Part shown: one piece after another, positions 1 to 49,134 of the stretch
How the letters are laid out: each line of letters begins with the position of its first letter
Numbering within the stretch: position 1 is the first letter of the stretch
NCBI GenBank assembly: GCA_009103225.1
Contig: RHPI01003570.1
Coordinates: 1-52,000 of the forward strand
Length of the DNA stretch: 52,000 nucleotides
Direction of reading: 5' to 3'
Source of the DNA: Chlorokybus atmophyticus
Lineage: Eukaryota; Plantae; Mesostigma and Chlorokybus algae
Notes under the pieces: model-generated
Seen by the model: only the letters and a program-made list of their open reading frames with translations
Told to the model about the DNA's origin: nothing
The model's database searches: none
Translations under genes and position numbers: made by a program

Positions 1-1
1 T

Positions 2-3000
2 TGTGTATGCTCTGGTGGCGGTAGCTCTGTCCGTGTGTATCCATGCTTGCCTCAGCTACATGTGCATGCTAGTCCTTCAACACACTTCTACCAGTGCAAC
101 CAGCCTGGTCAGCGCCGCGCGCTACCCACACTAGTATCCTATCCAGGCTCCTACGCGTTCCGCAATGCAGGCGACGGCATGGTGTTGGACTCCAACACTG
201 GACAGCTGGAAGAACCCAATGCCCGCGAGCGCGAGCGTGCTATGGGATTCTTTCCAAGCAGCATCACAGGCTCCACGCTGACAACCAGTCAGCAATGTCA
301 GTTGTTGGGGCGCGCCATGGATCAGAACAGCATGGTGTGGTACTTGGAAATGTGCTTTGCTCTCCAGGACCGCCATGTGTCCTTCCAGGAGCTCGAACAC
401 CTGGCTGGGGGGTGGATTGCTCGCTTTTCAGAGACCAAAGCAGCACACACCGCCCTCGAGACCGCCCACATGGAGGAGCAGGCAGCAGTTACTGTGGAAG
501 ACATTCCAGTGGTCGCCAACGCTACCTCATGGTCCCACGCCATTGGACCGCTGGCCACGGGCCAGACTCGAGAGCAACTCGAGGCTCTCCTCAACAAGTG
601 GAGGAGCCAATTCAATTTCAGTGTGAAGGAGCTGGGCATCTGCTCAGCATATCAGATGGACATTGAACTAGTGGACACCGAACCGGTGTTCAGAAGACAG
701 TACCGCCTCTCCAAGCTAGAAGAAGACTTGGTGGAACAGAGGTGCAAGGCGCTGCTAGATGCAGGCCTGATCGAGGAGTCCACATCGGACTTTGCGGCCG
801 CGACCGTCATGCCCCTGAAGAAAGATTCAGCAGGCAACTGGACAGACCGGCGCATGTGTGGCGACTATCGCCCCCTCAACAACAAGACCAAGCAGGACAG
901 GTATCCAATGCCTACCGCAGAAGGCATCTTTGACGATGTAGGAGACTGCACGGTCTTTAGTATCCTGGATATGCGCCAAGGGTACAACCAGATCGCCATC
1001 AAGGAGGAGGACAAGCACAAGACTTCCTTCTGGGGAAACCGGCAGCTGTACCAGTGGAAGGTCATGCCCTTCGGACTGAAGAACGCTCCGGCCAAGTTCC
1101 AGCGCGTCATGGACAAAGCCCTCAAGGGGTTGGACTTCGCACGCTGCTACATCGACGACATCCTCATCTTCAGTCACAGCAATGAGGAGCATCTCCAGCA
1201 CATCGAAGAGGTGCTACAGAGGCTGAAGGAAGTCGGGATGACGGTGCACCCTGACAAGTGCACCTTCTTCACCCACAAGGTACCCTACCTAGGACACATG
1301 ATTGTGCCCCATGGTGTGTACGTACAGCAGGCCAAAGTGGAGGCACTGGTGGCTATCCCTGCCCCCACAGACCTCACGCGGCTGCGGGCCTTCCTCGGCC
1401 TTGCCAACTATTACCGCCGGTTTGTCAAGGACTTTGCCAAGATCGCAAGGCCTCTCAACGAACTACTGAAGAAGGACACCGAGTTCTTGTGGAAGGAGGC
1501 ACAACAGGAGGCCTTTCAGGAGCTGAAGCTCCGCCTCACCACAGCTCCCATTCTGCAACGCCCTGACTACACCAGGTCGTTCATCCTGCACACAGACTGG
1601 AGCAAGCTCGGCATGGGGGCCGTGCTCGTACAGCACGACAACAACAAGAAGGAGCGCGTAGTGTCGTACGCCAGCCGCAGCAACAACAGTGCTGAGGCCA
1701 ACTACAGCAGCTACGAAGGGGAGTGTCTCGCCGCAGTGTGGGCCATCTCCTTCTTCCGACCCTTCCTGTTTGGACGGCAGTTCCAACTGGTCACTGACCA
1801 TCAACCCCTCAAGTGGCTAATGAACAACCAGCACTTGACAGGAAAGTTAGCACGATGGGCGCTGCTGCTCCAGGAGTACGACTTCGAGGTGGAACACCGC
1901 GCAGGCCTTGCCAACCAGGATGCGGATGGCCTCAGCCGTAACCCCCACCTCAGCACCAACGACGCCACAGGCGCCCGACATGAGTTGGGTCCTACAGCTG
2001 CACCTTCAGGTGTGGCCACCATGTTCGCTGTCGCTGCGCTACGCTCAGGACGCAGGACTCAGATCGCTGAGGCAGCAGCAGACGGGGACATGCCCGCTCT
2101 CGAGCCCGCCATCACCACCACCGATCCTTTATCAGAAGAAGCAATCGCTGCCGACCCTGAGGTGGATGATGAGGAGCTGGCACCCACCGACACACGACAA
2201 GACATCTGGCTGGACGAGCCATCGCTCGCACTGCTTCAGACTGGACAACTTCCAGCAGGCATGAGCGCACGCGAGAAGGACCGCGTCCGGCAACGCACTC
2301 AGCGTTACCGCTGGGCCAACGACAGGCTGTATCGACGGATACAAGATGCAGATCAGGAGGTCCCCACACCAGCTGCACGTGAAGGCATCATCTCCTCCCT
2401 TCACACCGAGCTCGGGCACTTCGGTGTCAAGCGCACGGTCAGCCTGGTCAGGACCCAGTACTGGTGGTATGGGGTGCACAGACAGGTGCGGGAGTTCGTC
2501 AGCAACTGTCAGCAGTGTGACATGGTTCGCGCCAGCCTCAACACGCGCAATGCCACCTTGCATCCCCTTCCCATCTCCGGGTTGTTCTACCGCTGGGGAC
2601 TGGACATCCTTGGAGACCTAGCGCCCTCAGCGCGAGGCAACCGCTACATCCTCGTCATGATCGAGCACTTCTCCAAGTGGGTGGAGCTGGTGCCCCTGCC
2701 CGACAAGAGCAGTGAGGGAGTAGCCCAGGCTTTCCTCTCCCATGTACTCGGACGTTTCGGCAGCTGCGCTGAAGTCATCACCGACCAGGGTACGGAGTTC
2801 AGAGGAGCCTTCGACAAGCTTATCGACAGATGCTTCATCGACCATCGTCGCACCTCACGCGACCACCCGCAGGCCGACGGCCTCGCCGAACGTACCGTGC
2901 AGACCATCAAGAAGGCACTGCGCAAGTACGTCCTTGCCTACGAGAAGAATACCTGGGATGATCACCTCCCATGGGTAGCAATGGGCTACCGGCTGTCCAA

Positions 3001-3664
3001 GCAGGCAGCCCTGCGAGAGTACAGCCCATACTATCTACTGTTCGGAAGGCAGCCACTGCTCCCTTTCCGCGCACAGCAGGAGGTCGACAGAGTGGTGGAC
3101 AATCTCGACAACCCCGACGAGATGTTGTATGATCTGACAGTGCGCAGTGCGCTGTTCGAACACACAGTCCCCATGGCCTTCAACAACCTGCGCATCGCGC
3201 AGCACCGCGACACGCTGCGTTATGAGCGTGTGCGCAGTGGTTTCTACAAGGAGCGGGAGCGCCGCTTCGAGTCAGGAGACTTCGTCTACCGTATGGCGTC
3301 CACACGCGACACCCTCGATACCTCCGTCGGGCGTGCTGTTTACAAGGTATTGAAGGTGCACCCCACAGGGGTACTGGACCTGTTGGGACAACGAGGCGAG
3401 CGCATGAAGGACAACATGGTCAACTGTGCGCCCTGTCATCTCCCCTACATTGCTGGCTTCACCAAGATCCAGCACCCGCGTCCGCTGCGCAGCACCCGAT
3501 GCGAGAAGTGTGGCAGCGCCGACGACGACCCATTGATGATGTTATGCGATGGCTGTAATCAAGGCATGCACTGCTACTGCCTTGACCCTCCACTGGACGC
3601 AGTACCCTTATGGGAGTACTGGTGCGATGACTGCCGCATCAACGGTCCCCCACACAATCGGTAG
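2..3664 (+). CDS. pol: Pol polyprotein, 5'-truncated: C-terminal part of a DNMT3-like cytosine methyltransferase, reverse transcriptase, RNase H, integrase, PHD finger
   Basis: The frame is open from nt 2. RT: MPFGLKNAP and YIDD (1148-1159). RNase H: ILHTDWS (Asp 1595-1597) and TDHQPL. Integrase: HHCC zinc site (LHTELGH...CQQC, about 2400-2520) and D(2603)-D(2783)-E(2888) with 35-residue spacing. C4HC3 PHD at 3500-3634. The N-terminal ALPTLVSY...ERERAMGFF...QLLGRAM resembles DNMT3 TRD and motifs IX-X. Confidence 0.95.
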   Translation, partial: CVCSGGGSSVRVYPCLPQLHVHASPSTHFYQCNQPGQRRALPTLVSYPGSYAFRNAGDGMVLDSNTGQLEEPNARERERAMGFFPSSITGSTLTTSQQCQLLGRAMDQNSMVWYLEMCFALQDRHVSFQELEHLAGGWIARFSETKAAHTALETAHMEEQAAVTVEDIPVVANATSWSHAIGPLATGQTREQLEALLNKWRSQFNFSVKELGICSAYQMDIELVDTEPVFRRQYRLSKLEEDLVEQRCKALLDAGLIEESTSDFAAATVMPLKKDSAGNWTDRRMCGDYRPLNNKTKQDRYPMPTAEGIFDDVGDCTVFSILDMRQGYNQIAIKEEDKHKTSFWGNRQLYQWKVMPFGLKNAPAKFQRVMDKALKGLDFARCYIDDILIFSHSNEEHLQHIEEVLQRLKEVGMTVHPDKCTFFTHKVPYLGHMIVPHGVYVQQAKVEALVAIPAPTDLTRLRAFLGLANYYRRFVKDFAKIARPLNELLKKDTEFLWKEAQQEAFQELKLRLTTAPILQRPDYTRSFILHTDWSKLGMGAVLVQHDNNKKERVVSYASRSNNSAEANYSSYEGECLAAVWAISFFRPFLFGRQFQLVTDHQPLKWLMNNQHLTGKLARWALLLQEYDFEVEHRAGLANQDADGLSRNPHLSTNDATGARHELGPTAAPSGVATMFAVAALRSGRRTQIAEAAADGDMPALEPAITTTDPLSEEAIAADPEVDDEELAPTDTRQDIWLDEPSLALLQTGQLPAGMSAREKDRVRQRTQRYRWANDRLYRRIQDADQEVPTPAAREGIISSLHTELGHFGVKRTVSLVRTQYWWYGVHRQVREFVSNCQQCDMVRASLNTRNATLHPLPISGLFYRWGLDILGDLAPSARGNRYILVMIEHFSKWVELVPLPDKSSEGVAQAFLSHVLGRFGSCAEVITDQGTEFRGAFDKLIDRCFIDHRRTSRDHPQADGLAERTVQTIKKALRKYVLAYEKNTWDDHLPWVAMGYRLSKQAALREYSPYYLLFGRQPLLPFRAQQEVDRVVDNLDNPDEMLYDLTVRSALFEHTVPMAFNNLRIAQHRDTLRYERVRSGFYKERERRFESGDFVYRMASTRDTLDTSVGRAVYKVLKVHPTGVLDLLGQRGERMKDNMVNCAPCHLPYIAGFTKIQHPRPLRSTRCEKCGSADDDPLMMLCDGCNQGMHCYCLDPPLDAVPLWEYWCDDCRINGPPHNR

Positions 3665-3702: not shown

Positions 3703-3710
3703 AGGGGGGG
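3703..3710 (+). promoter_or_regulatory. Polypurine tract (plus-strand primer site)
   Basis: AGGGGGGG lies 39 nt after the pol stop and directly before repeat B1 (TGGCTT...). Confidence 0.75.
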
Positions 3711-3949
3711 TGGCTTGTTGACTGTGTGCACTACGACACAGTCTGTACACAAAGGTGGCGAGCGGCATCGGCTCGTCCACTGCACTAAACACCGCGTAGG
3801 CTCATCTTCAAGCCTATGCCCACGATTGGGGGGTTGTCTTTTGCTTGCATGACTCCAATGCAGTGCACGGCACTAGCATGCGTGCAGCACTAGCACTCCT
3901 CTGCAGCCTGTCCGAGACAAGGTTGCCCTCGACCATGGCAGGCACGACA
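3711..3949 (+). repeat. Terminal repeat segment B, first copy (239 bp)
   Basis: Matches 4602-4840 with 3 substitutions (compared by eye) and ends GGCACGACA. Confidence 0.95.
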
Positions 3950-3951
3950 GC

Positions 3952-4601
3952 TGTCATGCCATCTACCCTCGCATGCCAGTTCTTCTCAAGCATGCCTACA
4001 CCCAGCCCCACGCCAGGGCTACCAGCATGAAGACCGCGCGAGCCCCAGCCTACTGCTAGCTACTGTATCACTCATGTAGCATGTAGCTAGGGCTACTTTA
4101 TAGACCTGTCTGTAGGGACCGCGCGTAGCTGATCAGTTGCAAGTCTGTTAAGAACACATGTGCTATATCAAGTCTTAGGAGATTTCCGAAATAGCATGAG
4201 GCCTCGATGTGACCGTTGGCCTAGTGCCCGCGTGGCACTGCACAGTCATGATTTGACATGTATAAGTAGGAAGTCACGTCACCAGACTGGCTGGTGACAC
4301 TGTAAGTGAGTACTGTGAGTACTAGGAGTACTAAGAAGTAAAGACTCTGTTTCTAAAGAGCTTGTGAAGCGACTTGAACTGGAAGCACGCTGCCCCGGTT
4401 GCCAAGAATTCCCTTACTGCGTGAGACACGGTGCATGCTCTTGTGCGCTGTGCCTGCCATTGCTGTGAGCTTGACGGTGGTGTGTTGTTTCAGTAGTCAG
4501 GGTGTTGTATCCACGTGTTGCACACTCATTCACCTCACTTAACAGTGTATCATTCTATCCACTCATGCAAAGAACTGTGTCCACAGCACTACCTATCGTA
4601 G
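3952..4601 (+). repeat. Terminal repeat segment A, copy in the 3' block (650 bp)
   Basis: Starts TGTCATGCC. Collinear without indels with 48271-48920 (about 20 substitutions, about 97%, by eye). Contains TATAAG at 4261-4266. Confidence 0.95.
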
Positions 4602-4840
4602 TGGCTTGTTGACTGTGTGCACTACGACACAGTCTGTACACAAAGGTGGCGAGCGGCATCGGCTCGTCCATTGCACTAAACACCGCGTAGGCTCATCTTC
4701 AAGCCTATGCCCACGATTGGGGGGGTGTCTTTTGCTTGCATGACTCCAATGCAGTGCACGGCACTAGCATGCGTGCAGCACTAGCACTCCTCTGCAGCCT
4801 GTCCGAGACAAGGTTGCCCTCGACCATGACAGGCACGACA
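4602..4840 (+). repeat. Terminal repeat segment B, second copy, forming the right end of the element
   Basis: Similarity to B1 stops exactly at ...GGCACGACA (4840), followed by unrelated TCCTG. GGCACGACA is an 8/9 inverted repeat of the A start TGTCATGCC. Confidence 0.92.
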
Positions 4841-6220
4841 TCCTGCACATTACATGCTAACTATGTGGAGCGTGTCACCTAGCAGCAATGGTCTCAGTGC
4901 CTGTTGCGACTTGCAATGCCACTCTCCTTATTGTACACGACCTCTTGCCGTCTAGCACCACCAAGTATATAGCCCCCAACACATAATCCAGTAGCGCATA
5001 TTAACATCTCCACAGCTGCAAGGGAGCCTTGGTTGCCTTGACCAAGAGGGAATGGTGTATGTGCAAAATGAATCCCCGAGGAGTTCGTCTTCTTTTTCAA
5101 GTTATTGCCGGCGTCCAACATAAGGGTAAGGTGCACGTAATCATTAGCGTCTAGCAGGGTTGATCAGTCCCCACTTAGTCCATCCCTCTGTCGACCAGCC
5201 CTCAATTAGTATCCGTCTACATGCAATGTGTCTTATGTGACAAAGGCATGATACCGTCCGCATCCATAGGCTGTGCTTCATAAACTCATCGCACTCGTCA
5301 TACCGGGGTGGCGCATGCACAACCATAATGCCACAAAAACCTTGTAGCAAAAATAACTCCGCGCGGGCATCATAAAAAATATCTACTAACTTTTCGGCAC
5401 CCCTCACTATGCATTGTAGCGATCATGCACTGTAACAAGCTGGCGCCCTTCTTACGAATACTAAGATAACTAATTTTACAGGCCTCTTTTACAAAGATTT
5501 TGTGACACTATGGTAGTCCTTAGAGATGGAAGCCTCGCAGTGTTTAGCGATGGAGGGCGAGGTCGCGAGTGTATGCATCATTGTTAATAGAATGCGTATG
5601 GCGCTTATTAAGCTATCCTTGAGTGGTATCAAGCAACACCCAATGGCTTCACAGTGACATCGGCATTTTGTCAATAGGTCGTTTACAAAATATGTTGCAC
5701 ACACCTCATGTGCACGAGGTCGCTTTAGTGCACCAGGCTAAACAGGGTGTGCTGCAACATCCGCGGTGGAACGAGGACTGACGTTGTGGGCATTTTGCAA
5801 ATGAGGTGCGATACCGTTGTAGCCCTTGTTGAATATATCTAAGCTGGTCGCAAATGTGCAATTACAACATTGTTGTTGTGTACACCGATCTACATTATGC
5901 ATGCACACTTAGAGCCTGCGATATTGTTGTAGCACCTGCCTGTGCAAGAACATCTTGGTTCTTACGCTGGGAAGTGCTTGCTATGTCAATAAGTGAGGTT
6001 TGTCTCCAGTTGTTTCCATGGCCGCATTCTGGGTGACGCATTATTAGGTGTTTGCTAACAGGGGTCGTGATGCATCGAGACTGTGATCACTGCAAACATG
6101 TTAACACGCAGTGCGCAAATTGCCATATGCTGCAGAACAGCCTGCTGCTGGATGGAGCTTGTCTTAAGCTCCATTTCCGGTAAGTGCCCCACATTGGATT
6201 GCCAAAGGCCAACATTTATA

Positions 6221-7105
6221 TTATGCACATGATATTGCAAAAAAGAAATGAGAGTGGTGTTCCTCACGTTTGCGCATGCAACGTTTCAGTTGTATAGCAG
6301 AGAGGAGCGGAACATTGTCGCGAGCAACACGTGCGAGTACAGGTGCGATTAATGTCACCTTACATTTACCCTTACGAAGGGTGCACGTATTTGCTCGAGA
6401 GTCCAATTTCAAACCTGTTTCGGTGTGCCGCTGTTCACCCAAAACAACATCCACCCCGGGGATACCTATATCCGCCACGATGAAAGTTGGTCGAGTCTTG
6501 TGGCTGTTAATAACAAAACGCCCCTTCACCTCCCCAATGGCATTGAGGGTGGAACCAGCAGCACGTACATACGACGTGACTGGTGTGAAAGGTATGTTAT
6601 TACGTTGCACCCAAGCATGTTCAACAAAGTTATGGTTTGCACCGGTATCAATTAATGCTGTACATGGTGTGCGCATAAGTTGACTCTCACATCTCCATTT
6701 GAGTGGTCCCGAGTGACCATCGAATGTAGCTAATGTCGGAGTGCCGTGATCGGTAGCAGGCTTGATAAAGATCACTTGCAACGGTGAAGCTCCTGTATCC
6801 TTGCGTGAGAGTTGCATAATTACTTCTCCCCCTTTTAACAATTGCGACCACGGGCCATGATATCGAGGGATAACTACACATGCAGTGACAGCATGTTGTA
6901 ATTGCAACTCGTGTAAGTGCTTAACAGCAGTTACTAATTTAAAAAATGGAACATTGATTAAAACACAACCGTTTGCATTTGTCAACACAGGTGGTGTGCT
7001 CATATCAGTCCATACATCTGATACATCACAAAGAGAGGAAACTTTATCAAGAAGTACAGAGTTTTCAAAGTCGTTCTGCTCGACTAAGCTACCAACCACG
7101 GACAA
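6221..7105 (-). CDS. Retrotransposon aspartic protease region (truncated pol start)
   Basis: ALIDTGANHNFV catalytic motif and a downstream VDVVLG (ILG-type) motif; in frame with the upstream gag. Confidence 0.8.
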   Translation of the reverse strand: MSVVGSLVEQNDFENSVLLDKVSSLCDVSDVWTDMSTPPVLTNANGCVLINVPFFKLVTAVKHLHELQLQHAVTACVVIPRYHGPWSQLLKGGEVIMQLSRKDTGASPLQVIFIKPATDHGTPTLATFDGHSGPLKWRCESQLMRTPCTALIDTGANHNFVEHAWVQRNNIPFTPVTSYVRAAGSTLNAIGEVKGRFVINSHKTRPTFIVADIGIPGVDVVLGEQRHTETGLKLDSRANTCTLRKGKCKVTLIAPVLARVARDNVPLLSAIQLKRCMRKREEHHSHFFFAISCA

Positions 7106-7108
7106 TTC

Positions 7109-8155
7109 CTATTTCTTGTCCCTCTGCTGCTTGGCCTTCTGTGCATTCCGCTTTGCATAGCACTTGGCCTCCTCATGACCTGTCTTCTTGCAGAAACTGC
7201 AAGTGATGATGGATTTGGCCGCGTTGTAGGGGCCAGCAGGCTGAGATGTTTTCGCCTTTTTCACAAAAGGTTTGTTGTCAGTGGCCGGGCGCTTTGCAGC
7301 TGAAACCGGGGCTGCCTCTTTTGCCGTGGTTTGCATGTTTGCGTGAGAGCGCTTTACACTGTCCACAGTAGCAACCATCTGCATCAGCATTTGTAAATCC
7401 GTCGAGGCCCACTCTTGCTGAACCGGACGCCCGTTCTGACGCAAGTTGTGCAGCTGGTTGCGAGCAACCTGGGCACGATCTGCGCCACCATAGCGCTGCT
7501 CCATGAAAGAGCACAACTGATTTACTTCCCACCCGAGGTTCGTATCCCGTTGCTTACGGCGATACCACTTTGCCAGAGCATCGTTTGGGATCAGCAACTC
7601 AGCTACACGCAACTTCCCCTCCTCAGAAATGTGAAGGGAGTTGACATAGTGTCTTAGCTTCACGAGCCAGTTGAAAATTGCCGCTTGTTTGTTGGGAACA
7701 AACTCGGCAGGTCGAGCAAGCGCCTGAACAGGTGGACCATTATCAGAGCGTTGAAGGCGCTCGATCATGTTCAAAACACGTTTTCCTTCACCCATCGATC
7801 CCTCCCAATCTTGCCCCATAAAGGTGGTGAGCTTTGAGATCTTTTCCGCCATATGAAAGAGGAAGTTGACAAGCGTGAGAATCGCCTCGCGAGGATCCTT
7901 ATCATAGGTGCCAAGAAAGTGGTCCATTAACTCTTGTTTTGTCAAGTGCATTGATCTTTCAAGCTGAACAAATGATGGTGGTGGTGGTGGTCCGTTTGGT
8001 TCCACCAAGCCATCCACATCCTTAGCAGCATGAGACTCATCAGGTGCATCATCCGGGTTGGAAATATCCTCCATGGAGAGAAACTCCTCCTCACGAGATA
8101 ATTGCTCTTTTTGCGAGCTTTCCCCCTTTGAGGTGGGCACCGAGTTCTCTGCCAT
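7109..8155 (-). CDS. gag: Retrotransposon Gag with one CCHC zinc knuckle
   Basis: 348-aa ORF with CSFCKKTGHEEAKC (CX2CX4HX4C) near the C-terminus and a Ty3 capsid-like ALAKWY...FMEQRYG...ARNQLHNLRQ region. Confidence 0.85.
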   Translation of the reverse strand: MAENSVPTSKGESSQKEQLSREEEFLSMEDISNPDDAPDESHAAKDVDGLVEPNGPPPPPSFVQLERSMHLTKQELMDHFLGTYDKDPREAILTLVNFLFHMAEKISKLTTFMGQDWEGSMGEGKRVLNMIERLQRSDNGPPVQALARPAEFVPNKQAAIFNWLVKLRHYVNSLHISEEGKLRVAELLIPNDALAKWYRRKQRDTNLGWEVNQLCSFMEQRYGGADRAQVARNQLHNLRQNGRPVQQEWASTDLQMLMQMVATVDSVKRSHANMQTTAKEAAPVSAAKRPATDNKPFVKKAKTSQPAGPYNAAKSIITCSFCKKTGHEEAKCYAKRNAQKAKQQRDKK

Positions 8156-8838: not shown

Positions 8839-9118
8839 TGAAAGTACACACGTGCACCTGACAAGCAGCTGGCAAGCAGGCAAGTCACCGACGTGTGTGA
8901 TGGTACCTCACACGTGGAGAGGCCGCCTATTTGATGGGTGGCTTCAACGCGCAAATAATTGTAGCCTAGCACTCTAGTGTAGACTTGTGTGTACATCAGC
9001 CTATAACTATGCACTTGTACACTTGTATTGTAATGCACTTGGGTGCTGGGCATAGCCACCGTGCGATCGACCCATAGCGACCCCCCAGCATAAGCTGTGT
9101 GTCGCATGTAACTCGTGT

Positions 9119-11215
9119 GTGAGTTCTACCTCTGCCTTTACCAACAGCTGGTGGAGTAGGACCTTTGCACCCACCACCACCATTGATTGGCGCCGCCTCG
9201 GGCCCGTCATACCAACCACCACTCAACGACTCATCCGGCATAAACAAGCGCACAGCTGTGGCAGCACAGTGCACTATTGCCCTTGCCTCCACACCCTTCT
9301 CTACCTCCACTCCACATCGTGCTCATTATTGAACATCAACTGATCATGCATGGAGTTAGTGCAAGCACAAGTACACACGTTGTACTCGAGCATACACACA
9401 AGCCTAATAGCAAAGGCTCTATAAGGATTACAATAAAGTCATGCTGCGGGCTTTTATACCTGCCAGTTGCACCTGTCTACTCTAGTGGCCATCACGTCTT
9501 CTACACTTAACACTAGGGATGTAGATGTTAACCAACTCCTGAGCTCCAAGTTGTTCCACATAGCTACCTTTTGGAGCTCTTCAACAAGCTTTCACGCATC
9601 ATGTAGTGACGTAACCACCGATCTGAAAAAGTTCTACCGCCACGCCCAAAACTTTCTCGACTCGACTTATGTCCGCGCCCGGATCTTCTCAACTAAAGTT
9701 CGCGCCTGGACCCTTCTCCACTGCATCTTCTGGCAAACTATCCTCAACCACAGGGCGAGCTAATCAGACTCGAGAATATCCTCAATACTTATGAATCACT
9801 TAGCGTCTCAGCCAACGCTGTCATGACCGCCCACCAAGGTAAGCACGTGCTCATCAATAGCATAGCACCAGTGAGAGTATTGCTGGACACCGGCGCACAG
9901 CCCGTGCTCATTGGCAAGCACCTCGCGCGCACCCTTAACGTCACCATAGAGCTATTGTGCCCGTACTCCCTCAACACTCATCAATAATGCGCAACAAGAA
10001 TTTGGCATTGCAATGCGTGCCATTTTTGTCACCCTAGTGGGTCTCGACTCTACTCACACCACTTCGGTGGATTGGCACGGTGTGGTTGCGGGTCCCCGTA
10101 GTTACAACAGGATTTTTAAGCTGAAGTTGGACCTTTCCTGCCGGCAGGGAGATTAGCTGCTCAAAGGAGGCTTGGCTCTTGCCAACCAAGTATACTAGCA
10201 ACAGCATTGCTACAAAATTCCCTGTCATTATAATCGTGATAGTAGGTGCCAACACACGTAGCGCATCAATAACGCAACACGTCACGAGTCACGCGCACAC
10301 GGCATTCGAGCCACGTTGACCAACATGGCTGCTGTGGAAGAATTGTTTGTGGCAGAACATCGATCTGGGACACGCTCACAGGGCCTTAAGGTGGATGCCA
10401 TCCTTGACCACGATCACAAGGCTACCCGTGCAACCCACCCAACCAACCTCGTTGCGCCCTACACTGGTCTTATACCGTGGCACATACGCCTTCCGGAATT
10501 GGGGGGAGGGCATGGTGTGGGACAGCACCACAGGTTAGTTACAAAAACCGAATACCCAACAGCGCAAACGCGTGATGGGTTTCTTCCCACACATTGTGTC
10601 CTTTTCCAACCCTAACGACAGTTAACAGCGACAATTGCTAGGCCGCACCATGGATCGGAAAAGCATGGTGTGGTTGTTGGAGACGTGTTGCGCCATTCAT
10701 GACCATCGTGTGTCCCCAAAGGACTTTGAACATGATTGGGAGTAGATCAATCGCCCTCAACACGTCCCAACCTACACAACACTCGAGATTGCTCGTGCGG
10801 AGGAGCAGGTCGCAGTCACTGTTGAAGACATCCTTTAAAAGGCCAATGCCACTGTTTTTGGATTACAGCATGGGCCCCCTCGTCACCGATACCATTCGAC
10901 AATAGCTGAAAGCCTTGCAGAACAGGTGGAGAGCAAAATTTAGCTTCAATGTCAAAAAATTGCGTAATTACTCTGTCTACAGTGTGGACATTGACCTCAT
11001 TAATGAAGTGCCAGTCTTTAGGCGACAGTACAAGCTGTCCAAGCTGGAGAAATGTTCAATTGAACAACGCTGCTAAGCACTACTCGAGGTCGGCCTCATT
11101 GAGGAGTCAACATCTGACGCCGCTGCCACTATCATGCCACTCGAATAAGATGCTAATGGCAACTGAACAAATGGACTAATGTGTGGAGACCACTATCCCG
11201 CTAACAACAAGGCCA
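9119..11215 (+). pseudogene. Degenerate relative of the DNMT-bearing gypsy family (protease, DNMT C-terminal part, RT N-terminus)
   Basis: VRVLLDTGAQPVLIG protease at 9871. PTLVLYRGTYAFRNWGEGMVWDSTTG, RKRVMGFLP and LLGRTMDRKSMVW align with the left-hand pol. VPVFRRQYKLSKLE...GLIEESTSD aligns with its RT N-terminus. There are several stops and frameshifts. Confidence 0.85.
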
Positions 11216-12652
11216 AGAAGAGATGGGAGGCCTAATAATATAGTGAGTAGTGTGACAAGATGGATATGCTGTCAGTCTACAATCACCATAGATAAATCCC
11301 CTTGGACCAAGTGTCAGATTCTTTATTAAGATACTCTGCTTCATTACACAATCCCTTTGGCAGTGTAGCAGGTGTCTCCAGCGGTTGCTATGGCATAGGG
11401 GTCATTTGTACACGTTGAAGCTCCTAAGAACATTGGATGCCAACATTGGAGATGTTGAGAACTAGTGATGCGCGTAGTGTGTGTGTATTTGCCTCCCACA
11501 TACAAGTGTGCACACACCAAGGACGAGTGTAGCAAGCACGCCAACTATAGAGACAATGTGCGACCCACTGTATTAAGCAGTATACAGTGTCTCATATACT
11601 ATGCTACTAAGCACTAGTCAACTCTAGTCAACTCTGGTCAAAGTCAACACTAGTCAACACTAGTCAATGGTCAAAGTTAAGTATGATCATGGTTGACCAT
11701 AACTGCCGTAACTCCCGTAACTCTCGTGACTATAAAGGTTAAGCTAATCGTACCAACTACATGTAGGCGCCGCCTATACATGTACTTTCAATGAGCTATA
11801 CCATTTAACACTCCCACGCGAGTAGCTTGACCTTGAACTTCAAGTTCTTTTCGTAAGCTTACCCATATTGACTTACTCTATTGAACACTCTCACAGATGT
11901 GTTGCCAATTCCCCACTACCATCGGCTGTGACCCAGAGTGCTGCGCTAACGCCTCAGGCCTCGCCTTCGTGTGCTAGGCAAGAAGTAGCCGAGTGTTCTG
12001 CACATCCTGCCTCCCCTCAACCACAGCCACATGCTCGCAATATCAACTCAGCACCCTCCTTTTCAGCCGCGGAGACTTACTACTTGCCACCGCACTCTGA
12101 CCATCCGGAGGCATGTCCATCAAGAAGCAGCTGTAGCTCGCCCTCTCCCTCCAAGCTTGCCACATTGATCCCAGCCTGTCTTGTTGGTAAAGAGATTGAT
12201 CGAGGTGTCCTAAAAGCTGCGCTGAAAGACAAAGGCTTCATGCCTGACCTCTCAAAGCAACATGAGAGATCGTGGAGGAACGGGAAGCAACCAACAAGCG
12301 CAAGGCTGTGGAGCAAGAAGATAACGCTTTACCTCCTCTAAACGACAGTGCCACAGCGAGCGCCTGCCAGAATGTGCAGGTTGACAAAAAAAAACGAAGA
12401 AGGTTGTTGCAACAAAGGACGCTGACAGGACCAAAAAAGGAAAGGTGAGGCATCGTTACGACATTAGAAGAAGCGCAGCGCCTTGAAGCCTCACTGGGAC
12501 TGACTGTGTGTCCTGAGTAGGCACAGGCGGGTTTACAGCGTCAAGTGGCTGCTCAGCATCGTCCTTAGGGACAGCCGGTGCGGCACGAGCTGCCTAAGCT
12601 CAAAGCACCGACGCGCAGACGCTTTTAGGGGCTGACTCGTAGTGCAAAGGAG

Positions 12653-13356: not shown

Positions 13357-13683
13357 NNNNNNNNNCACGCCTGGTTGAGGCTACTACAATCCTTCATTTG
13401 CATGTTCATAAGCATGCACATGGGAAGTGCAGGACACTGTCACATGTCACAGTATTGATCATCTGCATGCTTACAAGCATCCCCCCCCGCGGATGGGGAG
13501 ACGCCCTGTTGCAAGAAAGCGATGTGCCATGTCTGCAAAACACATCAGAAGACTGTGGCAAATAAATCAAAGAATCCACAAGCGTGTCCCTTCTGCAAGC
13601 AACCTCACCCATTTTGGTCGCCACGCCTGATGCAAGACGCCAACGTGTCGGCGGTGATTCGGCCCCCGCTTTAATGCCAATTG

Positions 13684-14227: not shown

Positions 14228-15179
14228 ATGTCGGCGGCAGCAGTTGATTGCCCCTCACCTAGGAGACCATGCTTGGTGTGCCCACAATGCAATGCGTACG
14301 TATGTGCCAATGGCCGTAGGCAGCAAATGCGAGCACACTTGACCGAATGCCAGCGAGTGCAGACAGTGTGCCACGGTTTTAGTGCTGCTTGCTGGCATCA
14401 CACCACACACAATGTCGACGTGTTTAGCTGCCGCCTCGGCCAAGTGCTGTGCAAGGAACCAGAGTTTTTCCATTGCGTGCAGTGCGTGTGCAAATTGTGC
14501 TCGCGCTCATGCTTCGAGTGGCGAGGGGAACCCATGCGCTTCTTCACTTGGACAACACCGGGACATGTGGTGGATGCTGTGGTAATTTGGCAAAGTGGAC
14601 CACGTAGTATCACTGCATGTTATGTTGGGCGTATGCTTATTTCATGCATGTTGAAGCTGTTGTCGCATTCAGAGCAGTCTTGCACGGTGTGGGCGTGGGC
14701 AGTTCCATCCCCTGGCCGCTGTAGAGGAGGCAGACCATCGACCGTTGGACAGCGCACTGCATCGGCTGCGGAACGCAGTTAAGTTGGGATGCGAGCAGCT
14801 GATCGGTGTGAGTGTCATGGTGCATTGGCCGCTGGATGGGGAATGGTATGCGGGCGTTGTGGAATTATTCAAGCAAGCGTCAGGTCAGCATCGCTTCGTG
14901 GCGTGCGAGATTGAGGACGCATCATATATGCATGGTGCAATGGAAAATGTTTTTGCAGGGCAGCACCGTATAGTATTCGATGACGGTGATCGACCACAAA
15001 CCATCAACTTCAAAGGGCACAACGTATTCGCGTACACATCAGTTGACGGGGCACGCCATGTTCTGCGCGCCGGAGGGGAGAACGTCAGTCGCAAAATAAG
15101 CCTTTCAGGCAGCGACAGGCAGGCTCAGACAGGCTCAGGCACCAGTCAGTCCCTCAGTCCGTGGTCAGTCACCATGTAA
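14228..15179 (+). CDS. Small spliced gene encoding a Tudor/Agenet-like domain, with a possible Cys-rich (zinc-binding) upstream exon
   Basis: Removing the GT-AG intron 14884-14958 gives LIGVSVMVHWPLDGEWYAGVVELFKQASGQHRIVFDDGD, which matches the plant PDS5/MSH6-type Tudor pattern (VxWPxDxxWYxGxV...HxIxYDDGD). Acceptor at 14672. The 5' exon (CPQC...H...C) is uncertain. Confidence 0.6.
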
Positions 15180-23853: not shown

Positions 23854-26800
23854 ATGGTTGGAGAGAAGCGCAGTGCGGCCGGCAGCGTTGACGTCGAGGT
23901 GACCGTCGCCGCCACCGCTACCGCCGCCTCCGCCGCCTCCGTCGCAGGTGCTGCTGCCTCCGCCCTCGGAGGCGAGGAGGGAAGCGTCAAGAGGGCCAGA
24001 TTGGAGAAGGTGTACCTCGCCCCTGGTGCCGTGATGACGTCCAACAACAACAACAACACCAGCGATGTGGACGGCCATGTTGCTGGCGCCGTCCATATGG
24101 ACATCGATGAGGACTTGCACAGCCGCCAGCTTGCAGTGTATGGCAGGGAGAGCATGCGGCGCCTTGCTGCCAGCAACGTGCTCATCTCGGGGCTCAAAGG
24201 GCTTGGCGTTGAGATTGGTATGTGAGCTGTTCACTTCTGCTCTGTATCCATCTTTTAGCGTTACAGCGTGTGCATGTAAATGCATTGTGCTGCACTTCCA
24301 CAACAGGCGGGTTCTTTGCTAACAATATGGCTGAACACGCCTGGTTGAGGCTACTACAATCCTTCATTTGCATGTTCATAAGCATGCACATGGGAAGTGC
24401 AGGACACTGTCACATGTCACAGTATTGATCATCTGCATGCTTACAAGCATGCATGTCTGAAGTGCAGCTCCGCATAAAAAGTAAATGCAGGATAGTGTAA
24501 CTATAACACCTCGTCACTGCATGTCCAAACTGCTGCAATGCATGGTATATTGTTGAACATTCACGGTACACAGCTTGTTCTCAGGTTCATGAACTTTGAA
24601 CACGTTCATATTATGTATTTTCATGCTTAGTGCGGTGCTCAACGACGCATGGCAGTATCTGCTCATGATTGGGGCTTTTGGACTGCACATCACTTAGCAC
24701 TGTGCTCTGTCCAGCAAGTGTGCTTGTGCTGTTTTTTCATGGACACTGTGCATGTGTTTGAACAACTATTGGTATTATTTGGTAACAAGTTCAAACATAT
24801 ATAGCTCGAAAAGGCAGTGACATCACAAGCCAGTGCATGCTGTTTTGGTTGGGTACAAGCAACAAGACTGTGGTTTGCTAATGCAGTGTTCTTAGCAAGC
24901 TTACAGCGCAATTATTAACTTATGCAGCGAAGAATGTGATTCTCGCTGGTGTCAAGTCAGTGACCCTTCACGACAGCGGCACGGTGGAACTCAAAGACCT
25001 TTCGGCGCAGTTCTACCTCACGGAGAGCCAAGTGGGCACCAACCGCGCCGAGGCCTGTGCCGCGAAGCTGCACGAGCTCAACGCCAGCGTCAGCGTGGCG
25101 GTGCTCACCGGACCTCTGGCAGAAGACGTGCTGGCGGGTTTTGAGGTGCGCATCTTGTTGCAGACATCTATATGTGCGTAGGTGAGCGCGCATTTTTACA
25201 TGCGCGTTTACACGCACACACAGGAGCACATGCACGCACACGCATGTGCTCCTCTTTGTGTGCATGTAAATGCGTGTGTGCGTGCATGCACGCGCATGTG
25301 TGTGCACACCTGCCATGTTAGTTCTTGCACGGCTATGCGCGCGTGCATGTGTTCCGGTGTGCGTGCACGCATGCGCATGTGTGTGCACACCTGCCGTGCT
25401 AGTTCTTGCACGGCTGTGCGTGGCTGCGTGTGTCTTAGAGAACGAATGCAGCCCATTGTCTCATATGAGTGTAATTGCTGCGCAGGTGGTTGTCTTCACA
25501 GAGACAAGTCAAGCTGAAGCGGAGAGGTGGAACAACTTCTGTCACAACCACAGTCCGCCCATCGCTTTTCTCTGGGCGGACGTGAAGGGGTTGTTTGGTC
25601 GCTCTTTCACCGACTTCGGCCCGAGCTTCAAAGTCTTGGACCCGACCGGCGAGGACGCGCACACTGGCATCATTGCGTCCATCTCCAACGACAACCCTGC
25701 TCTTGTGACTTGCGTGGAGGATGAACGCCTGGAGTTTGAGGAGGGAGACTACGTGGTTTTCTCGGAAGTAGTGGGCATGAACGAACTCAATGACAAGCAC
25801 CCCCGCAAAGTGAAGAATGCTAAGCCCCATTCGTTCACACTTGAGGAGGACACCACAGGGTTTGGCCAGTACGTGCGTGGTGGCATCGTGCAACAGGTGG
25901 GAAGGCTGCTGTTGGCTGCAATTGTTGCTGTGTGGTTTTGGGTCTGTTTTGCGAAGCTTTCTGCAGCAGGTGAGTGCACATATATGTGCATGTGTGCGCA
26001 CTCACGTGCGTGTATACATGTGTCCAGGCGCGCGTACTTTGCGTGTAAGCATCTAGACACGTATCTGTATGATATGTACACTCTCGAAACACTCTTACTC
26101 ACATTCTTAACGTGTTCAGGTCAAGCAACCCAAGGTGTTGAACTTCAAGCCATTGAAGGAAGCCATGTCAGACCCCGGCGAGTTTCTGTTGAGCGACTTC
26201 GCCAAGATGGAGCGCCCGCCACTGCTTCACCTGGGGTTCCAGGCCCTTGAGGCCTTTCATCAAGAGTCGGGCCGTCCCCCGAGGCCCGGTGCAATAGAAG
26301 ACGCGGACCGACTCGTGGCCCTCGCACATGACATTAACGAGAAGGCGGGTTCGCAGAAGCTGGAGGGCGTCAATGAGGGCGTGTTGCGCCATCTGGCGGC
26401 GGGAGCCAATGCGCAGCTAAGCCCCATGGCGGCCATGTATGGCGGCATTGTTGGGCAGGAAGTGGTCAAGGCGTGCACTGGCAAGTTCCACCCCATCGTG
26501 CAGGTATGGCACACGTGTGCAGAGTTGGACTTGTGTGCTTTTGCGTGTTTCTGTACTGTGCGCGCGTGCATGCACGTGTACCTGTGTGTGTGTGTGTGTG
26601 TGTGCGTGCGTGCGTGCGCGCGCGCCTGTGCCTGTGCCTGTGCCTACGTGCGTGCACTTATACTAGCGTGCATTTGCACAGTTCTTCTACTTTGATGCAT
26701 TAGAGGCGCTGCCAGCGGAGCCGCTCATGCCAGAAGAAATCAAGCCCGCAAACTCGCGCTACGATGATCAGATTGCCGTGTTCGGCAGATTGTTGCAGCA

Positions 26801-28929
26801 GAAACTCCAAGACTTGCACGTGTTTGTGGTGGGCGCTGGCGCGTTGGGATGCGAGTTTCTGAAGAACCTCAGTCTCATGGGCGTGTCGACCAGTGCCAAA
26901 GGACTGCTTACCATTACAGATGATGACGTGATTGAAAAGAGCAACCTTAGCAGACAGTTTTTGTTTCGCGATTACAACATCAGCCAACCAAAGTCAACAG
27001 TGGCTTCAGGTACATGCCAAGGGTGTCGTGCTTGACTTTCTAGTGGATTGTTTGCAAATGTGGCAATGACAGTCAGGTACATGCCAAGGGTGTCGTGCTT
27101 AACTTTCTAGTGGATTGTTTGCAAATGTGGCAATGACATGTGGTTAGTACTGATACATCTGTCAACAGGTGCTGCGGCATTGATCAACCCAGACATCAAG
27201 ATCCGCGCGTTGCAGAACAGAGTCAGCCCTGAGACCGAGACAGTGTTTGATGACGCTTTCTGGGAGAACACCGATATCGTAATCAACGCCTTGGACAACA
27301 TCTCTGCGCGCTTGTATGTAGACTCGCGGTGCGTCTATTTCAACAAACCCCTGCTGGAGTCCGGCACGCTGGGTCCAAAATGCAACACTCAGATGGTGAT
27401 TCCCAGGTGAGTTGCGTGTGTGCATGTGAGCAAGTGTCACACACATGCGTAAGCTTGCACACCAGTCAATGTCAAGCTGGTGCATAACACGACCTGTTTG
27501 CACTTGCAGGCTTACAGAAAACTATGGTGCTTCAAGAGACCCTCCGGAAAAGCAGGCCCCCATGTGTACGGTGCACTCATTCCCGCACAACATCGACCAT
27601 TGCTTGACATGGGCGCGCTCAGAGTTTGAAGGGCTGTTCGAAAAGACCCCGACGGAGGCCAACCTGTTTCTAAACAAGCCCGAAGATTATGTCAAGAGCA
27701 TGAAACAGGCCGCGGACGCGCAGGCTCGTGAGTCTCTCGAGCGCGTGGTCGAGTGCCTCGTCACGGAGCGTTGTACAACATATGAGGACTGCATAGCGTG
27801 GGCACGCAACAAGTTCGAGGACTACTTTGCCAACCGCGTGAAACAGTTGACGTTCAACTTTCCCGAAGATGCGGCCACAAGCACGGGAGCCCTGTTCTGG
27901 TCTGCGCCGAAGCGCTTTCCGCGCCCGCTGCAGTTCTCCACAGATGATGCAAGCCACTTCACGTTCATGCAGGCCGCTGCCAACTTGCGTGCACAAGTGT
28001 ATAACATCCCGCGGCCGGCGTGGGCTTCTGACCGACAAAGGCTGTCGGAGGCCATCAACAATGTTGTCGTCCCTGAGTTTGTGCCCAAGTCTGGAGTGAA
28101 GATTGTGACCGATGAGAAGGCCACAAGCGTGTCGCAGTATGACGATGACGAGTCTGTCATCGACAAGTTTTTGAATGAGCTGCAAACCCACTCCAAAGAC
28201 TTGCCACAGACTTTCCGCGTGTCCCCCATTGAGTTTGAGAAGGTTTGCACGCATTGACAGAACGGACATGTGTGCAGGTGCATGTCGCTGTTGTTGTAGA
28301 TTGTTCAACAGTGACTGATCTGGTGTGTCTATCAGGATGACGACACCAACTTCCACATGGACCTGATTGCTGGTCTGGCCAACATGCGTGCGCGGAACTA
28401 CTCAATTGAGGAGGTAGACAAGCTGAAGGCTAAGTTCATCGCAGGGCGCATCGTGCCCGCCATTGCCACAACCACAGCACTTGCCACCGGCCTAGTGTGC
28501 CTGGAGCTGTACAAGGCGGTGCAGAGCAAGCCTATTGAATCCTACCGAAACTCCTTTGTGAACTTGGCTGTTCCTCTATTCGCCATGGCCGAGCCCATCG
28601 CGCCAAAGAAGATCACTTTCAACGACCTCGAGTGGTCCATTTGGGATCGATGGATCATCGAGGGTGATGTCACGCTGAGAGAGCTGCTAGAGTGGTTTGC
28701 TGCCAAGAAGCTGATTGCCTACAGCATATCATGCGGGCAAAGCCTGCTGTACAGCTCTCTGTTCCCCAAGCACAAGACCCGCCTCGACCGCAAGGTCTCA
28801 GAGCTGGCCGTTGAGATATCCAAGCTGTCTATTCCAGATAACAGGCGGCATTTTGATGTTGTTGTGGCGTGCGAGGATGAAGAAGGGGAGGACTTAGATG
28901 TGCCGCAGGTTTCCATCCGCTTTCGGTAG
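23854..28929 (+). CDS. UBA1: Ubiquitin-activating enzyme E1; 8 exons: 23854-24217, 24928-25145, 25486-25896, 26120-26503, 26682-27009, 27169-27406, 27510-28242, 28336-28929 (3270 nt, 1089 aa)
   Basis: [28 protein letters not shown] (ATP site), [15 protein letters not shown] (catalytic Cys), [12 protein letters not shown] and a C-terminal UFD. All introns are GT-AG and the exon phases join into one open frame. Confidence 0.97.
27006..27138. repeat. 67-bp tandem duplication spanning the UBA1 exon 5 donor site
   Basis: TCAGGTACATGCCAAGGG...GGCAATGACA starts at 27006 and again at 27073, with 1 internal mismatch. Confidence 0.9.
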
Positions 28930-48270: not shown

Positions 48271-48920
48271 TGTCATGCCATCTACCCTCGCATGCCAGTC
48301 CTTCTCGAGCATGCCTACACCCAGCCCCACGCCCGGGCTACCAGCATGAAGACCGCGCGAGCCCCAGCCTACTGCTAGCTACTGTACCGCTCATGTAGCA
48401 TGTAGCTAGGGCTACTTTATTGACCTGTCTGTAGGGACCGCGCGTAGCTGATCATTTGTACGTCTGTAAATAACACATGTGCTATATCGAGTCTTAGGAG
48501 ATTTCCGAAATAGCATAAGGCCTCGATGTGACCGTTGGCCTAGTGCCCGCGTGGCACTGCACAGTCATGATTTTACATGTATAAGTAGGAAGTCACGTCA
48601 CCAGACTGGCTGGTGACACTGTAAGTGAGTACTGTGAGTACTAGGAGTATTAAGAAGTAAAGACTCTGTTGCTAAAGAGCTTTTGAAGCGACTTGAACTG
48701 GAAGCACGCTGCCCCGGTTGCCAAGAATTCCCTTACTGCGTGAGACACGGTGCATGCTCTTGTGCGTTGTGCCTGTCATTGCTGTGAGCTTGACGGTGGT
48801 GTGTTGTTTCAGTAGTCAGGGTGTTGTATCCACGTGTTGCACACTCATTCACCTCACTTAACAGTGTATCATTCTATCCACTCATGCAAAGAACTGTGTC
48901 CACAGCATTACCTATCGTAG
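48271..48920 (+). repeat. Terminal repeat segment A, 5' copy, forming the left end of the element; segment B is absent apart from its first 13 nt
   Basis: About 97% identical to 3952-4601. Followed by TGGCTTGATGACT (12/13 match to the start of B) and then by sequence unrelated to B. Confidence 0.93.
48580..48585 (+). promoter_or_regulatory. Putative TATA box of the retrotransposon promoter
   Basis: TATAAG lies 31 nt upstream of the sequence complementary to the PBS and is conserved at 4261. Confidence 0.55.
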
Positions 48921-48930
48921 TGGCTTGATG

Positions 48931-48946
48931 ACTTACAGTGTCACCA
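48931..48946 (+). promoter_or_regulatory. Putative self-priming primer-binding site
   Basis: ACTTACAGTGTCACCA is the exact 16-nt reverse complement of TGGTGACACTGTAAGT at 48611-48626. No tRNA-iMet PBS (TGGTATCAGAGC) is present. Confidence 0.75.
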
Positions 48947-49134
48947 ACTTTGCACAAGTGAGTGTGTTGCAATCTGCATCAGATAGTGCAGTCTGCACCC
49001 AGGGATACATCGCTGGGCATTCGTTATCATTGTCATCACATAGTGCGCACAAGCACTAGTGTATTGGGTGGTAACAGCATCAGGATAGACGGTAGAGCAC
49101 AAGCACTCTACCCTTTCACCTCTGGACCAGCTGT

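Follow-up and report, generated by a model that had tools for sequence, protein, structure and literature searches.

A Ty3/gypsy retrotransposon in the alga Chlorokybus atmophyticus raises the question of how an element that encodes a DDE integrase can carry split direct repeats, in the order A-open reading frames (ORFs)-B-A-B, in place of ordinary long terminal repeats (LTRs). The A1-ORFs-B1-A2-B2 layout is that of PAT/TOC1/Ngaro/DIRS elements, which encode a tyrosine recombinase. Two partial copies of the Chlorokybus element are present in the 52,000-nt stretch of DNA analysed here (the window; assembly GCA_009103225.1, contig RHPI01003570.1, positions 1-52,000, forward strand). Comparison with related elements supports the conclusion that A-ORFs-B-GC-A-B is the regular layout of a clade and not a rearrangement. 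We consider it probable that this PHD-finger Ty3/gypsy element has an integrated form that is circularly permuted with respect to its reverse-transcription product, and that the integrase opens an internal palindrome.

The features of the two copies are as follows.

1-3664, plus strand: pol frame of copy 1, encoding reverse transcriptase (RT), RNase H, integrase (H2C2 zinc finger and DDE core) and a C-terminal PHD finger; identified as an ORF and by Pfam matches, and open to the left window edge, with no stop before position 35.
3703-3710, plus strand: polypurine tract (PPT) of A and seven G, the plus-strand primer site, adjoining B1; a G-run lies at the same place in all relatives.
3710-3949, plus strand: B1, the start of the reverse-transcription U3 region, which opens with the 14-mer GTGGCTTGTTGACT and closes with GGCACGACA; defined by repeat comparison.
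3941-3960, no strand assigned: near-palindrome of the B end (CA), GC and the A start (TG), in which two integrase end-sites stand head to head with a 2-nt spacer; the proposed cutting site.
3952-4600, plus strand: A2, comprising the remainder of U3 and then R and U5, with a TATA box at 4261-4270 and the predicted transcript start and self-primer segment at 4292-4307; defined by the repeat, the TATA box and a 16-nt complement to the primer-binding site (PBS).
4601-4840, plus strand: B2, the terminal B, with the CA at 4840 as right insertion end and the A2|B2 joint at 4600/4601, where one copy of the 14-mer lies; defined by repeat comparison.
48271-48919, plus strand: A1 of copy 2, with TG as left insertion end, a TATA box at 48580-48589 and the self-primer segment at 48611-48626; defined by repeat comparison.
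48920-48946, plus strand: U5 tail of 11 nt (48920-48930, identical to the start of B) and the 16-nt PBS (48931-48946), a perfect complement of 48611-48626 found by complement search.
49096-52000, plus strand: gag-containing frame of copy 2, with its first ATG at 49135, open to the right window edge and homologous to ORF1 of relatives over 49951-50583.

In copy 1, the pol stop at 3664 is followed by the purine run AGGGGGGG, B1, the dinucleotide GC (3950-3951), A2 and B2, with unrelated DNA beyond 4840. B1 and B2 are identical at 237 of 240 positions (98.75%, three differences), and A2 aligns without gaps to A1 of copy 2 at 96.9% identity. No further copies of A or B are present within the window. 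At both of its occurrences A begins with TGTCATGCC, and B likewise terminates with GGCACGACA at both of its own, each time in different flanking contexts. These outer ends form an 8/9 inverted repeat (chance at fixed positions approximately 1e-4), and they meet head to head inside copy 1 to create the 20-nt near-palindrome. Downstream of A1, copy 2 continues with a leader and then the open gag frame, and B is absent at that place. The 14-mer GTGGCTTG(T/A)TGACT, which opens both B copies (3710 and 4601), recurs right after A1 (48920). One end is visible per copy, such that the A-ORFs-B-A-B order within the window is a composite of two partial copies, and the complete layout with target-site duplications comes from relatives outside the window's own family. 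A preliminary description of this locus had placed the repeat boundaries to within 1 nt of those found here (B1 from 3710, A2 to 4600, B2 from 4601, A1 to 48919), and had correctly recognized both the TG...CA inverted ends at the A/B border and the sister copy whose 5' end carries only A before gag.

The pol product of copy 1 has the domain order RT-RNase H-DDE integrase, with Pfam matches to RVT_1 (residues 270-423, 4.6e-34), RT_RNaseH (511-615, 1.2e-36), Integrase_H2C2 (779-833, 2.3e-15) and rve (853-944, 3.3e-08), as well as to a PHD finger (1.2e-06). By domain order and integrase type the window element is a Ty3/gypsy element, as had been proposed, and no match to a tyrosine recombinase (Phage_integrase) was found in the ORFs of the window or in the main ORFs of the full-length relatives from Klebsormidium nitens (locus L085) and Calypogeia fissa (L086). 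Copy 2 shows homology to gag. For both copies the protease region falls beyond the window, and relatives give weak aspartyl-protease matches. The cytosine methyltransferase domain PF00145 has no match in the visible parts of the element, where the stretch from gag to RT lies beyond the window in both copies; it is present in several relatives.

The nearest proteins are 48-54% identical to the window pol (the best approximately 51-53%). Their sources are charophytes (Klebsormidium, Closterium), liverworts (Marchantia, Calypogeia) and metagenomes; a PHD finger is found in most and a cytosine methyltransferase in many. In a pol tree built with FastTree only, the window pol falls together with P0050 (K. 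nitens), P0012 (from ENA contig L002) and P0035 (Calypogeia) in a 41-row subclade (support 97), which is nested in a 65-row PHD clade (support 100) with the chromodomain elements outside. A search for further copies of the window's own family yielded none that was complete: the best pol protein match has 51-53% identity, and an exact look-up of a neighbouring window ORF returned no match. Searching viral contigs for the 18-nt junction turned up chance matches in four phage contigs that lack pol.

Two of the gypsy polyproteins, P0059 and P0058, carry a Dam-like adenine methyltransferase (PF05869, 30.5 bits) and a PHD finger between RNase H and integrase, and their branches lie basal to both major clades of pol. 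P0059 carries the Dam-like domain, but no terminal repeats were found at its locus (L089, 6540-11138), and a link to DIRS elements through this methyltransferase was considered and not drawn. Separately, the young Calypogeia copy L086 has a single in-frame stop (12260-12265) between the ORF with the integrase core and the ORF with the PHD finger.

Scanning metagenome contigs with the pol alignment yielded 80 loci. Among those with enough downstream DNA, approximately 25 have B1-NN-A2-B2 directly following pol (pol 37-53% identical). Twelve independent metagenome elements are complete, with A1 approximately 9 kb upstream, and approximately 10 more are represented by their 3' portion only. The split layout also occurs in K. 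nitens L085 and C. fissa L086, where repeat identity is 99.4-100%, and in L002, which reads A1, ORFs, PPT, B1, two bases, A2 and B2. L090, from a deeper methyltransferase-bearing branch, shares this arrangement too. The clade with split repeats thus spans green algae and liverworts, as judged by sequence comparison. The end motifs are kept across families, with A starting TGTCAT or TGCCAT and B ending CACGACA or CACGGCA. Repeat information is lacking at L001, L083/L084 and L091 (short loci or no repeats), and L087 from Closterium has tandem repeats only.

Exact 4-bp target-site duplications adjoin the A1 start and the B2 end in eight relatives (L008 TTTA, L009 ATGT, L021 CCAA, L025 ATAA, L043 ACCT, L062 AACC, L085 TCTT and L086 GTCA). 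Four others have such a duplication with one mismatch (L006, L028, L038 and L045), and it is absent or unclear in L013, L048 and L002. These duplications indicate that a DDE integrase acted on the A1 start and the B2 end. To our knowledge, DIRS-type elements insert without target-site duplication. Of the usual Ty3/gypsy signature of TG...CA ends, a short inverted repeat and a target duplication of 4-6 bp, the first two are seen in the window and 4-bp duplications in relatives. Where an ordinary element would have two identical LTRs, one after the PPT and one before the PBS, the integrated form here is A...B-GC-A-B.

When the forms found among relatives are tabulated, A-BAB accounts for 12 elements, A-B for at least five and ABA-B for none of the 17 loci with 5' information. 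B was never seen upstream of pol, and neither in the window nor among these relatives does a copy carry an identical unit, B-GC-A included, at both ends. The view raised at the outset that random truncation would be unlikely to produce such boundaries twice agrees with the 12 complete relatives and those of K. nitens and Calypogeia, and the flanking duplications proposed as a check are present in relatives.

Two side observations concern the repeats of relatives. The last 15 nt of B (CTACACGTCACGACA) occur twice in most copies of the metagenome family and three times in B2 of L021 (~14259-14288) and B1 of L043 (~8854-8883), which makes the integrase-proximal motif at the B end a short tandem repeat of variable copy number. 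L074 contains, 300 nt from the B of another element, a solo A.B unit (6059-6528, minus strand) that has TG...CA ends and is flanked by AAGT/AAAT. This is the form expected of A1/A2 recombination or of cutting at both palindromes.

The positions of the primer sites indicate the repeat unit of reverse transcription. A G-run PPT adjoins B1 in every family, and in every family the bases just 3' of A1 are complementary to a segment within A. The complement is 16 nt long in the window (48931-48946 pairing with 48611-48626), 19 in K. nitens, 12 in Calypogeia, 11 in L002 and 10-13 in the metagenome loci; for the window, a complement of at least 11 nt arose in 8 of 2000 shuffles. A TATA box lies approximately 31 nt upstream of the complementary A segment in all five families, placing the predicted transcript start at that segment. 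In Tf1-type self-priming, a transcript uses its own 5' end as primer at the PBS. The PBS and TATA arrangement suggests Tf1-like self-priming in which the first 11-19 nt of the predicted RNA would act as primer. Plant Tcn1 elements are likewise predicted to self-prime (PMC6317226). A tRNA primer was considered and set aside, because the site after A1 in the metagenome family does not begin like a tRNA PBS and the complement within A explains it better.

Because the PPT adjoins B1 and the self-priming PBS follows A1, the RNA would start within A and the reverse-transcription LTR would be B-GC-A, the repeat that the preliminary description had expected. A1 and A2 have diverged about equally upstream (9.7%) and downstream (8.3%) of the predicted start, and the identity of B1 to B2 follows that of A1 to A2. 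This indicates that both repeats are remade in every cycle, as in LTR elements. In the window family the PBS starts 11 nt after A, and its LTR would consequently start and end with the same 11-14 nt, of which the A2|B2 joint holds one copy. The tips of the cDNA in this family may therefore be joined through this 11-14 nt terminal overlap. As a separate observation, the start of B in the window family (3710-3731 and 4601-4622) corresponds to the 11-nt U5 tail and a copy of the PBS (compare 48920-48946) that lacks four bases (TACA), and this deletion abolishes complementarity to the self-primer.

The two junctions within the repeats behave differently. The B1-NN-A2 junction reads CA-GC-TG in the window, in K. 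nitens, in Calypogeia, in L090 and in the less decayed metagenome copies. Old copies show other dinucleotides (AC, GT, AT, AA and GA), most of which are transitions from GC. The idea that this dinucleotide is remade each cycle was rejected, because the variants sit in old copies with decayed CG sites and inheritance followed by decay suffices to explain them. Cuts after CA on both strands of this junction would leave normal 2-nt 5' overhangs.

The A2|B2 joint brings together the last base before the PBS and the first base after the PPT, that is, the end of U5 and the start of U3. Among 11 elements in which all four boundaries are known, it is exact in seven and 2-3 nt short in the other four, and further copies have 1-4 extra bases. 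PPT|B1 and A1|PBS remain constant where A2|B2 varies. From background indels, 0.02 events would be expected in such a window, against the four observed (p = 5e-5). The variants show no agreement with the tree. Because the length of this joint varies while PPT|B1 and A1|PBS stay constant, A2|B2 looks like an imprecise new joint of two cDNA tips, comparable to the junction of a two-LTR circle.

These features can be assembled into a cycle. Transcription would start within A, approximately 31 nt past the TATA box, and the 5' end of the RNA would prime itself at the PBS just after A1. Reverse transcription, with plus-strand synthesis from the PPT at B1, would then produce a linear cDNA with B-GC-A LTRs. 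In such a molecule the integrase sites (TG... and ...CA) would sit not at the tips but in the middle of each LTR, as the CA-GC-TG palindrome. The tips would presumably become connected, whether ligated into a two-LTR circle or bridged at the right end by a plus-strand template jump. Within the PBS-proximal LTR, integrase would cut the palindrome at CA on each strand, leaving 2-nt 5' overhangs, and insert the permuted molecule A-leader-gag-pol-PPT-B-GC-A.B. This would be the sole permutation that has the integrase ends outside and full A...A redundancy, yielding a terminally redundant RNA for the next round. The integrases of prototype foamy virus (PFV) and human immunodeficiency virus type 1 (HIV-1) cut the palindromic junction between two LTRs (PMC1180852, PMC1905944), which provides a precedent for the proposed internal cutting. 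A further claim, that internal cutting of CA-GC-TG by the DDE integrase is the obligatory route of integration in this clade, given that the tips carry no integrase sites and must be joined first, is plausible and is offered here tentatively. The positions of the TATA box, PBS, PPT, palindrome, joint and duplications are read directly from the DNA, and the rest of the cycle is built upon them.

Several points weigh against the permutation scheme as described. The circles, the linear cDNA, the transcript start and the poly(A) site are all deduced from sequence. A two-LTR circle has two identical palindromes, and for this reason A.B-GC-A-genes-B insertions would be expected as often as the observed form; none is present in 17 loci with 5' information, compared with 12 of the observed form. 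The preliminary description had envisaged a two-repeat circle opened internally. The part concerning the joining of cDNA ends is favoured by the behaviour of A2|B2, whereas the ABA-ORFs-B form predicted from it was not recovered. The one-sided choice of palindrome needs a cause, and either a template jump confined to the right end or an order inherited through RNA would do. Copies of the form A-genes-B, without A2.B2, are common (at least five), and these may be B1/B2 recombinants or direct products of cutting both LTRs of the linear cDNA. Their flanks match exactly in L041 (TTTT) and L082 (ATGG) and are unmatched in L022 and L079. Some of the variation at the A2|B2 joint could reflect slippage after insertion in an AT-rich context. 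Moreover, the window family is known from partial copies, and the complete layout and duplications are taken from relatives. Finally, L002, which has no target duplication, contains a 763-nt inverted copy of its own gag DNA (9039-9801, derived from 1827-2589, 98.7%) between A2 and B2; it represents a rearranged copy or an assembly chimera (3x coverage) and does not fit the scheme.

Some of these points would be accommodated if no circle were formed. Integrase would then cut the palindromes of the linear cDNA to give A-genes-B as primary product, and A-genes-B-GC-A.B would require a jump of the right-end plus strand onto a released B fragment or another cDNA before integration. Such a route agrees with the frequency of A-genes-B copies, two of which have exact duplications, and its restriction to right-end extension explains the missing A.B-A-genes-B form. 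Joints with +1 to +2 nt or microhomology fit end-to-end template jumps by reverse transcriptase as well as they fit ligation. However, A-genes-B can be generated equally well by B1/B2 recombination in the fashion of solo LTRs, and two of the four A-genes-B copies with both ends have the unmatched flanks expected of recombinants. We regard a cycle without circles as unlikely. Quite unlikely, in our estimation, is a cycle of the DIRS/PAT type in which integrase has taken the place of the recombinase. Genomic RNA would extend from A1 into B2, the repeat order and the A2.B2 joint would be inherited through RNA, B1-GC-A2 would be only the bridge template that joins the ends, and integrase would open a new B2-GC-A1 junction. 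The layout is indeed that of PAT/Ngaro/DIRS elements (PMC5890265), and this cycle would account directly for the occurrence of A-genes-B-A-B alone and never of A.B-A-genes-B. Nevertheless, a PPT before B1 and a self-priming PBS after A1 suffice for an LTR-type cycle, which never copies B2. In addition, A1 and A2 are homogenized over their whole length and B1 and B2 likewise, and A2|B2 varies among close relatives while adjacent boundaries do not, which disfavours a templated joint.

The window is a draft sequence with runs of N in which neither copy is complete, and it could be asked whether both copies are isolated rearrangements of an ordinary LTR element or whether B2 is an assembly error. 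The same order, end motifs and 2-nt spacer are found again in independent assemblies from several organisms, where duplications flank the outer ends, and within the window the two A starts coincide to the base despite different contexts, as do the two B ends. This explanation is accordingly judged to be extremely improbable.

The preliminary description knew of no such layout in a DDE element, but one precedent exists. KnitGypsy-Dnmt3 of K. nitens was noted to combine a DIRS-type repeat structure with Gypsy domains in the legend of Fig. 4c of de Mendoza et al. 2018 (PMC5890265), a report that gives no boundaries, target duplications, priming or mechanism for this element. Full-text literature searches for split direct repeats with integrase and gypsy returned papers on tyrosine-recombinase elements only, and no later paper taking up the KnitGypsy layout was found in the literature searched. 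The layout is thus already known in one species from a passing mention, and the window element adds a member with approximately 51-53% pol identity at best. What is new relative to the 2018 description is how widely the layout is distributed across the clade, where its boundaries and duplications lie, the predicted self-priming and the nature of the A|B joint. KnitGypsy-Dnmt3 shares the gypsy domain set and the A-coding-B-A-B order with the window element, and L085 of the same species also has the PPT|B1 boundary, CA-GC-TG, a self-priming PBS, a 4-bp duplication and a pol that belongs to the subclade of the window pol. It differs in that its pol (P0050) is approximately 39% identical to that of the window, its A and B sequences have only the end motifs in common with those of the window, and its methyltransferase is not seen in the visible parts of the window element.

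Other systems resemble the clade in single respects. PAT/TOC1/Ngaro/DIRS elements have the same split repeats, and their internal B1-A2 junction equals the joined outer ends. The window clade departs from them in its TG...CA inverted ends, its 4-bp duplications, a DDE integrase that carries an H2C2 finger, and a PPT and PBS in the positions known from LTR elements. Tf1/sushi elements and plant Tcn1 (PMC6317226) similarly have a PBS complementary to the predicted 5' end of their own RNA and not to a tRNA, but they possess ordinary LTRs and a chromodomain, whereas the clade has split repeats and an integrase that ends in a PHD finger. In the cleavage of PFV and HIV-1 two-LTR circles (PMC1180852, PMC1905944), a head-to-head CA...TG palindrome is also cut internally to give processed ends. 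That retroviral palindrome arises by joining cDNA tips, and the pathway is accessory at most. In the window clade the palindrome is inherited within the LTR with its 2-nt spacer, the A|B tip joint is non-palindromic, and internal cutting would be obligatory. The chromodomain gypsy element L088 (P0076) resembles the clade in its TG...CA ends, a 4-bp duplication and an RT-RNase H-integrase pol that is approximately 42% identical in the RT region; it differs by its two identical 1105-nt LTRs, which adjoin the PBS and PPT, and by its position in the other major pol clade.

Elsewhere in the window, 6221-8155 (minus strand) and 10458-11220 hold the remnant of a second, unrelated retroelement, with a gag-like ORF that has a zinc knuckle and an ORF with weak aspartyl-protease matches. 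Another stretch shows 64% similarity to the pol DNA of copy 1. An exact 115-nt repeat (13366-13480 = 24336-24450) adjoins a run of nine N (13357-13365) and is possibly an artefact of gap closing or scaffolding. At approximately 25270-28260 (plus strand) lie exons of the UBA1 gene for ubiquitin-activating enzyme E1 (E1_FCCH domain), whose best named matches are from land plants and green algae at 52-66% identity and place the host within the green lineage but no more precisely.

Elements of this clade occur in charophytes, liverworts and many environmental contigs, although a plant-wide survey of LTR elements (PMC6317226) lists no split-repeat lineage. Programs that search for LTR elements expect identical terminal repeats; they would miss split elements, take A...A as the LTRs or class the elements as DIRS. 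PHD fingers and cytosine methyltransferases are encoded by elements of this clade, and how these elements replicate therefore matters for their interaction with host chromatin. The anatomy of these elements separates the unit of reverse transcription (B-GC-A) from the site of integrase action (the internal palindrome), which offers a natural test system for internal cutting. It also demonstrates that a tyrosine recombinase is not required for split repeats, and bears on the origin of DIRS/PAT/Ngaro elements from gypsy-like ancestors. If internal cutting is indeed the route of integration, the old 'circle junction' model would be realized in nature. Split repeats of the DIRS/PAT type would then be derivable from an ordinary LTR cycle, and this clade would be a living model of the step before a tyrosine recombinase replaced the integrase.

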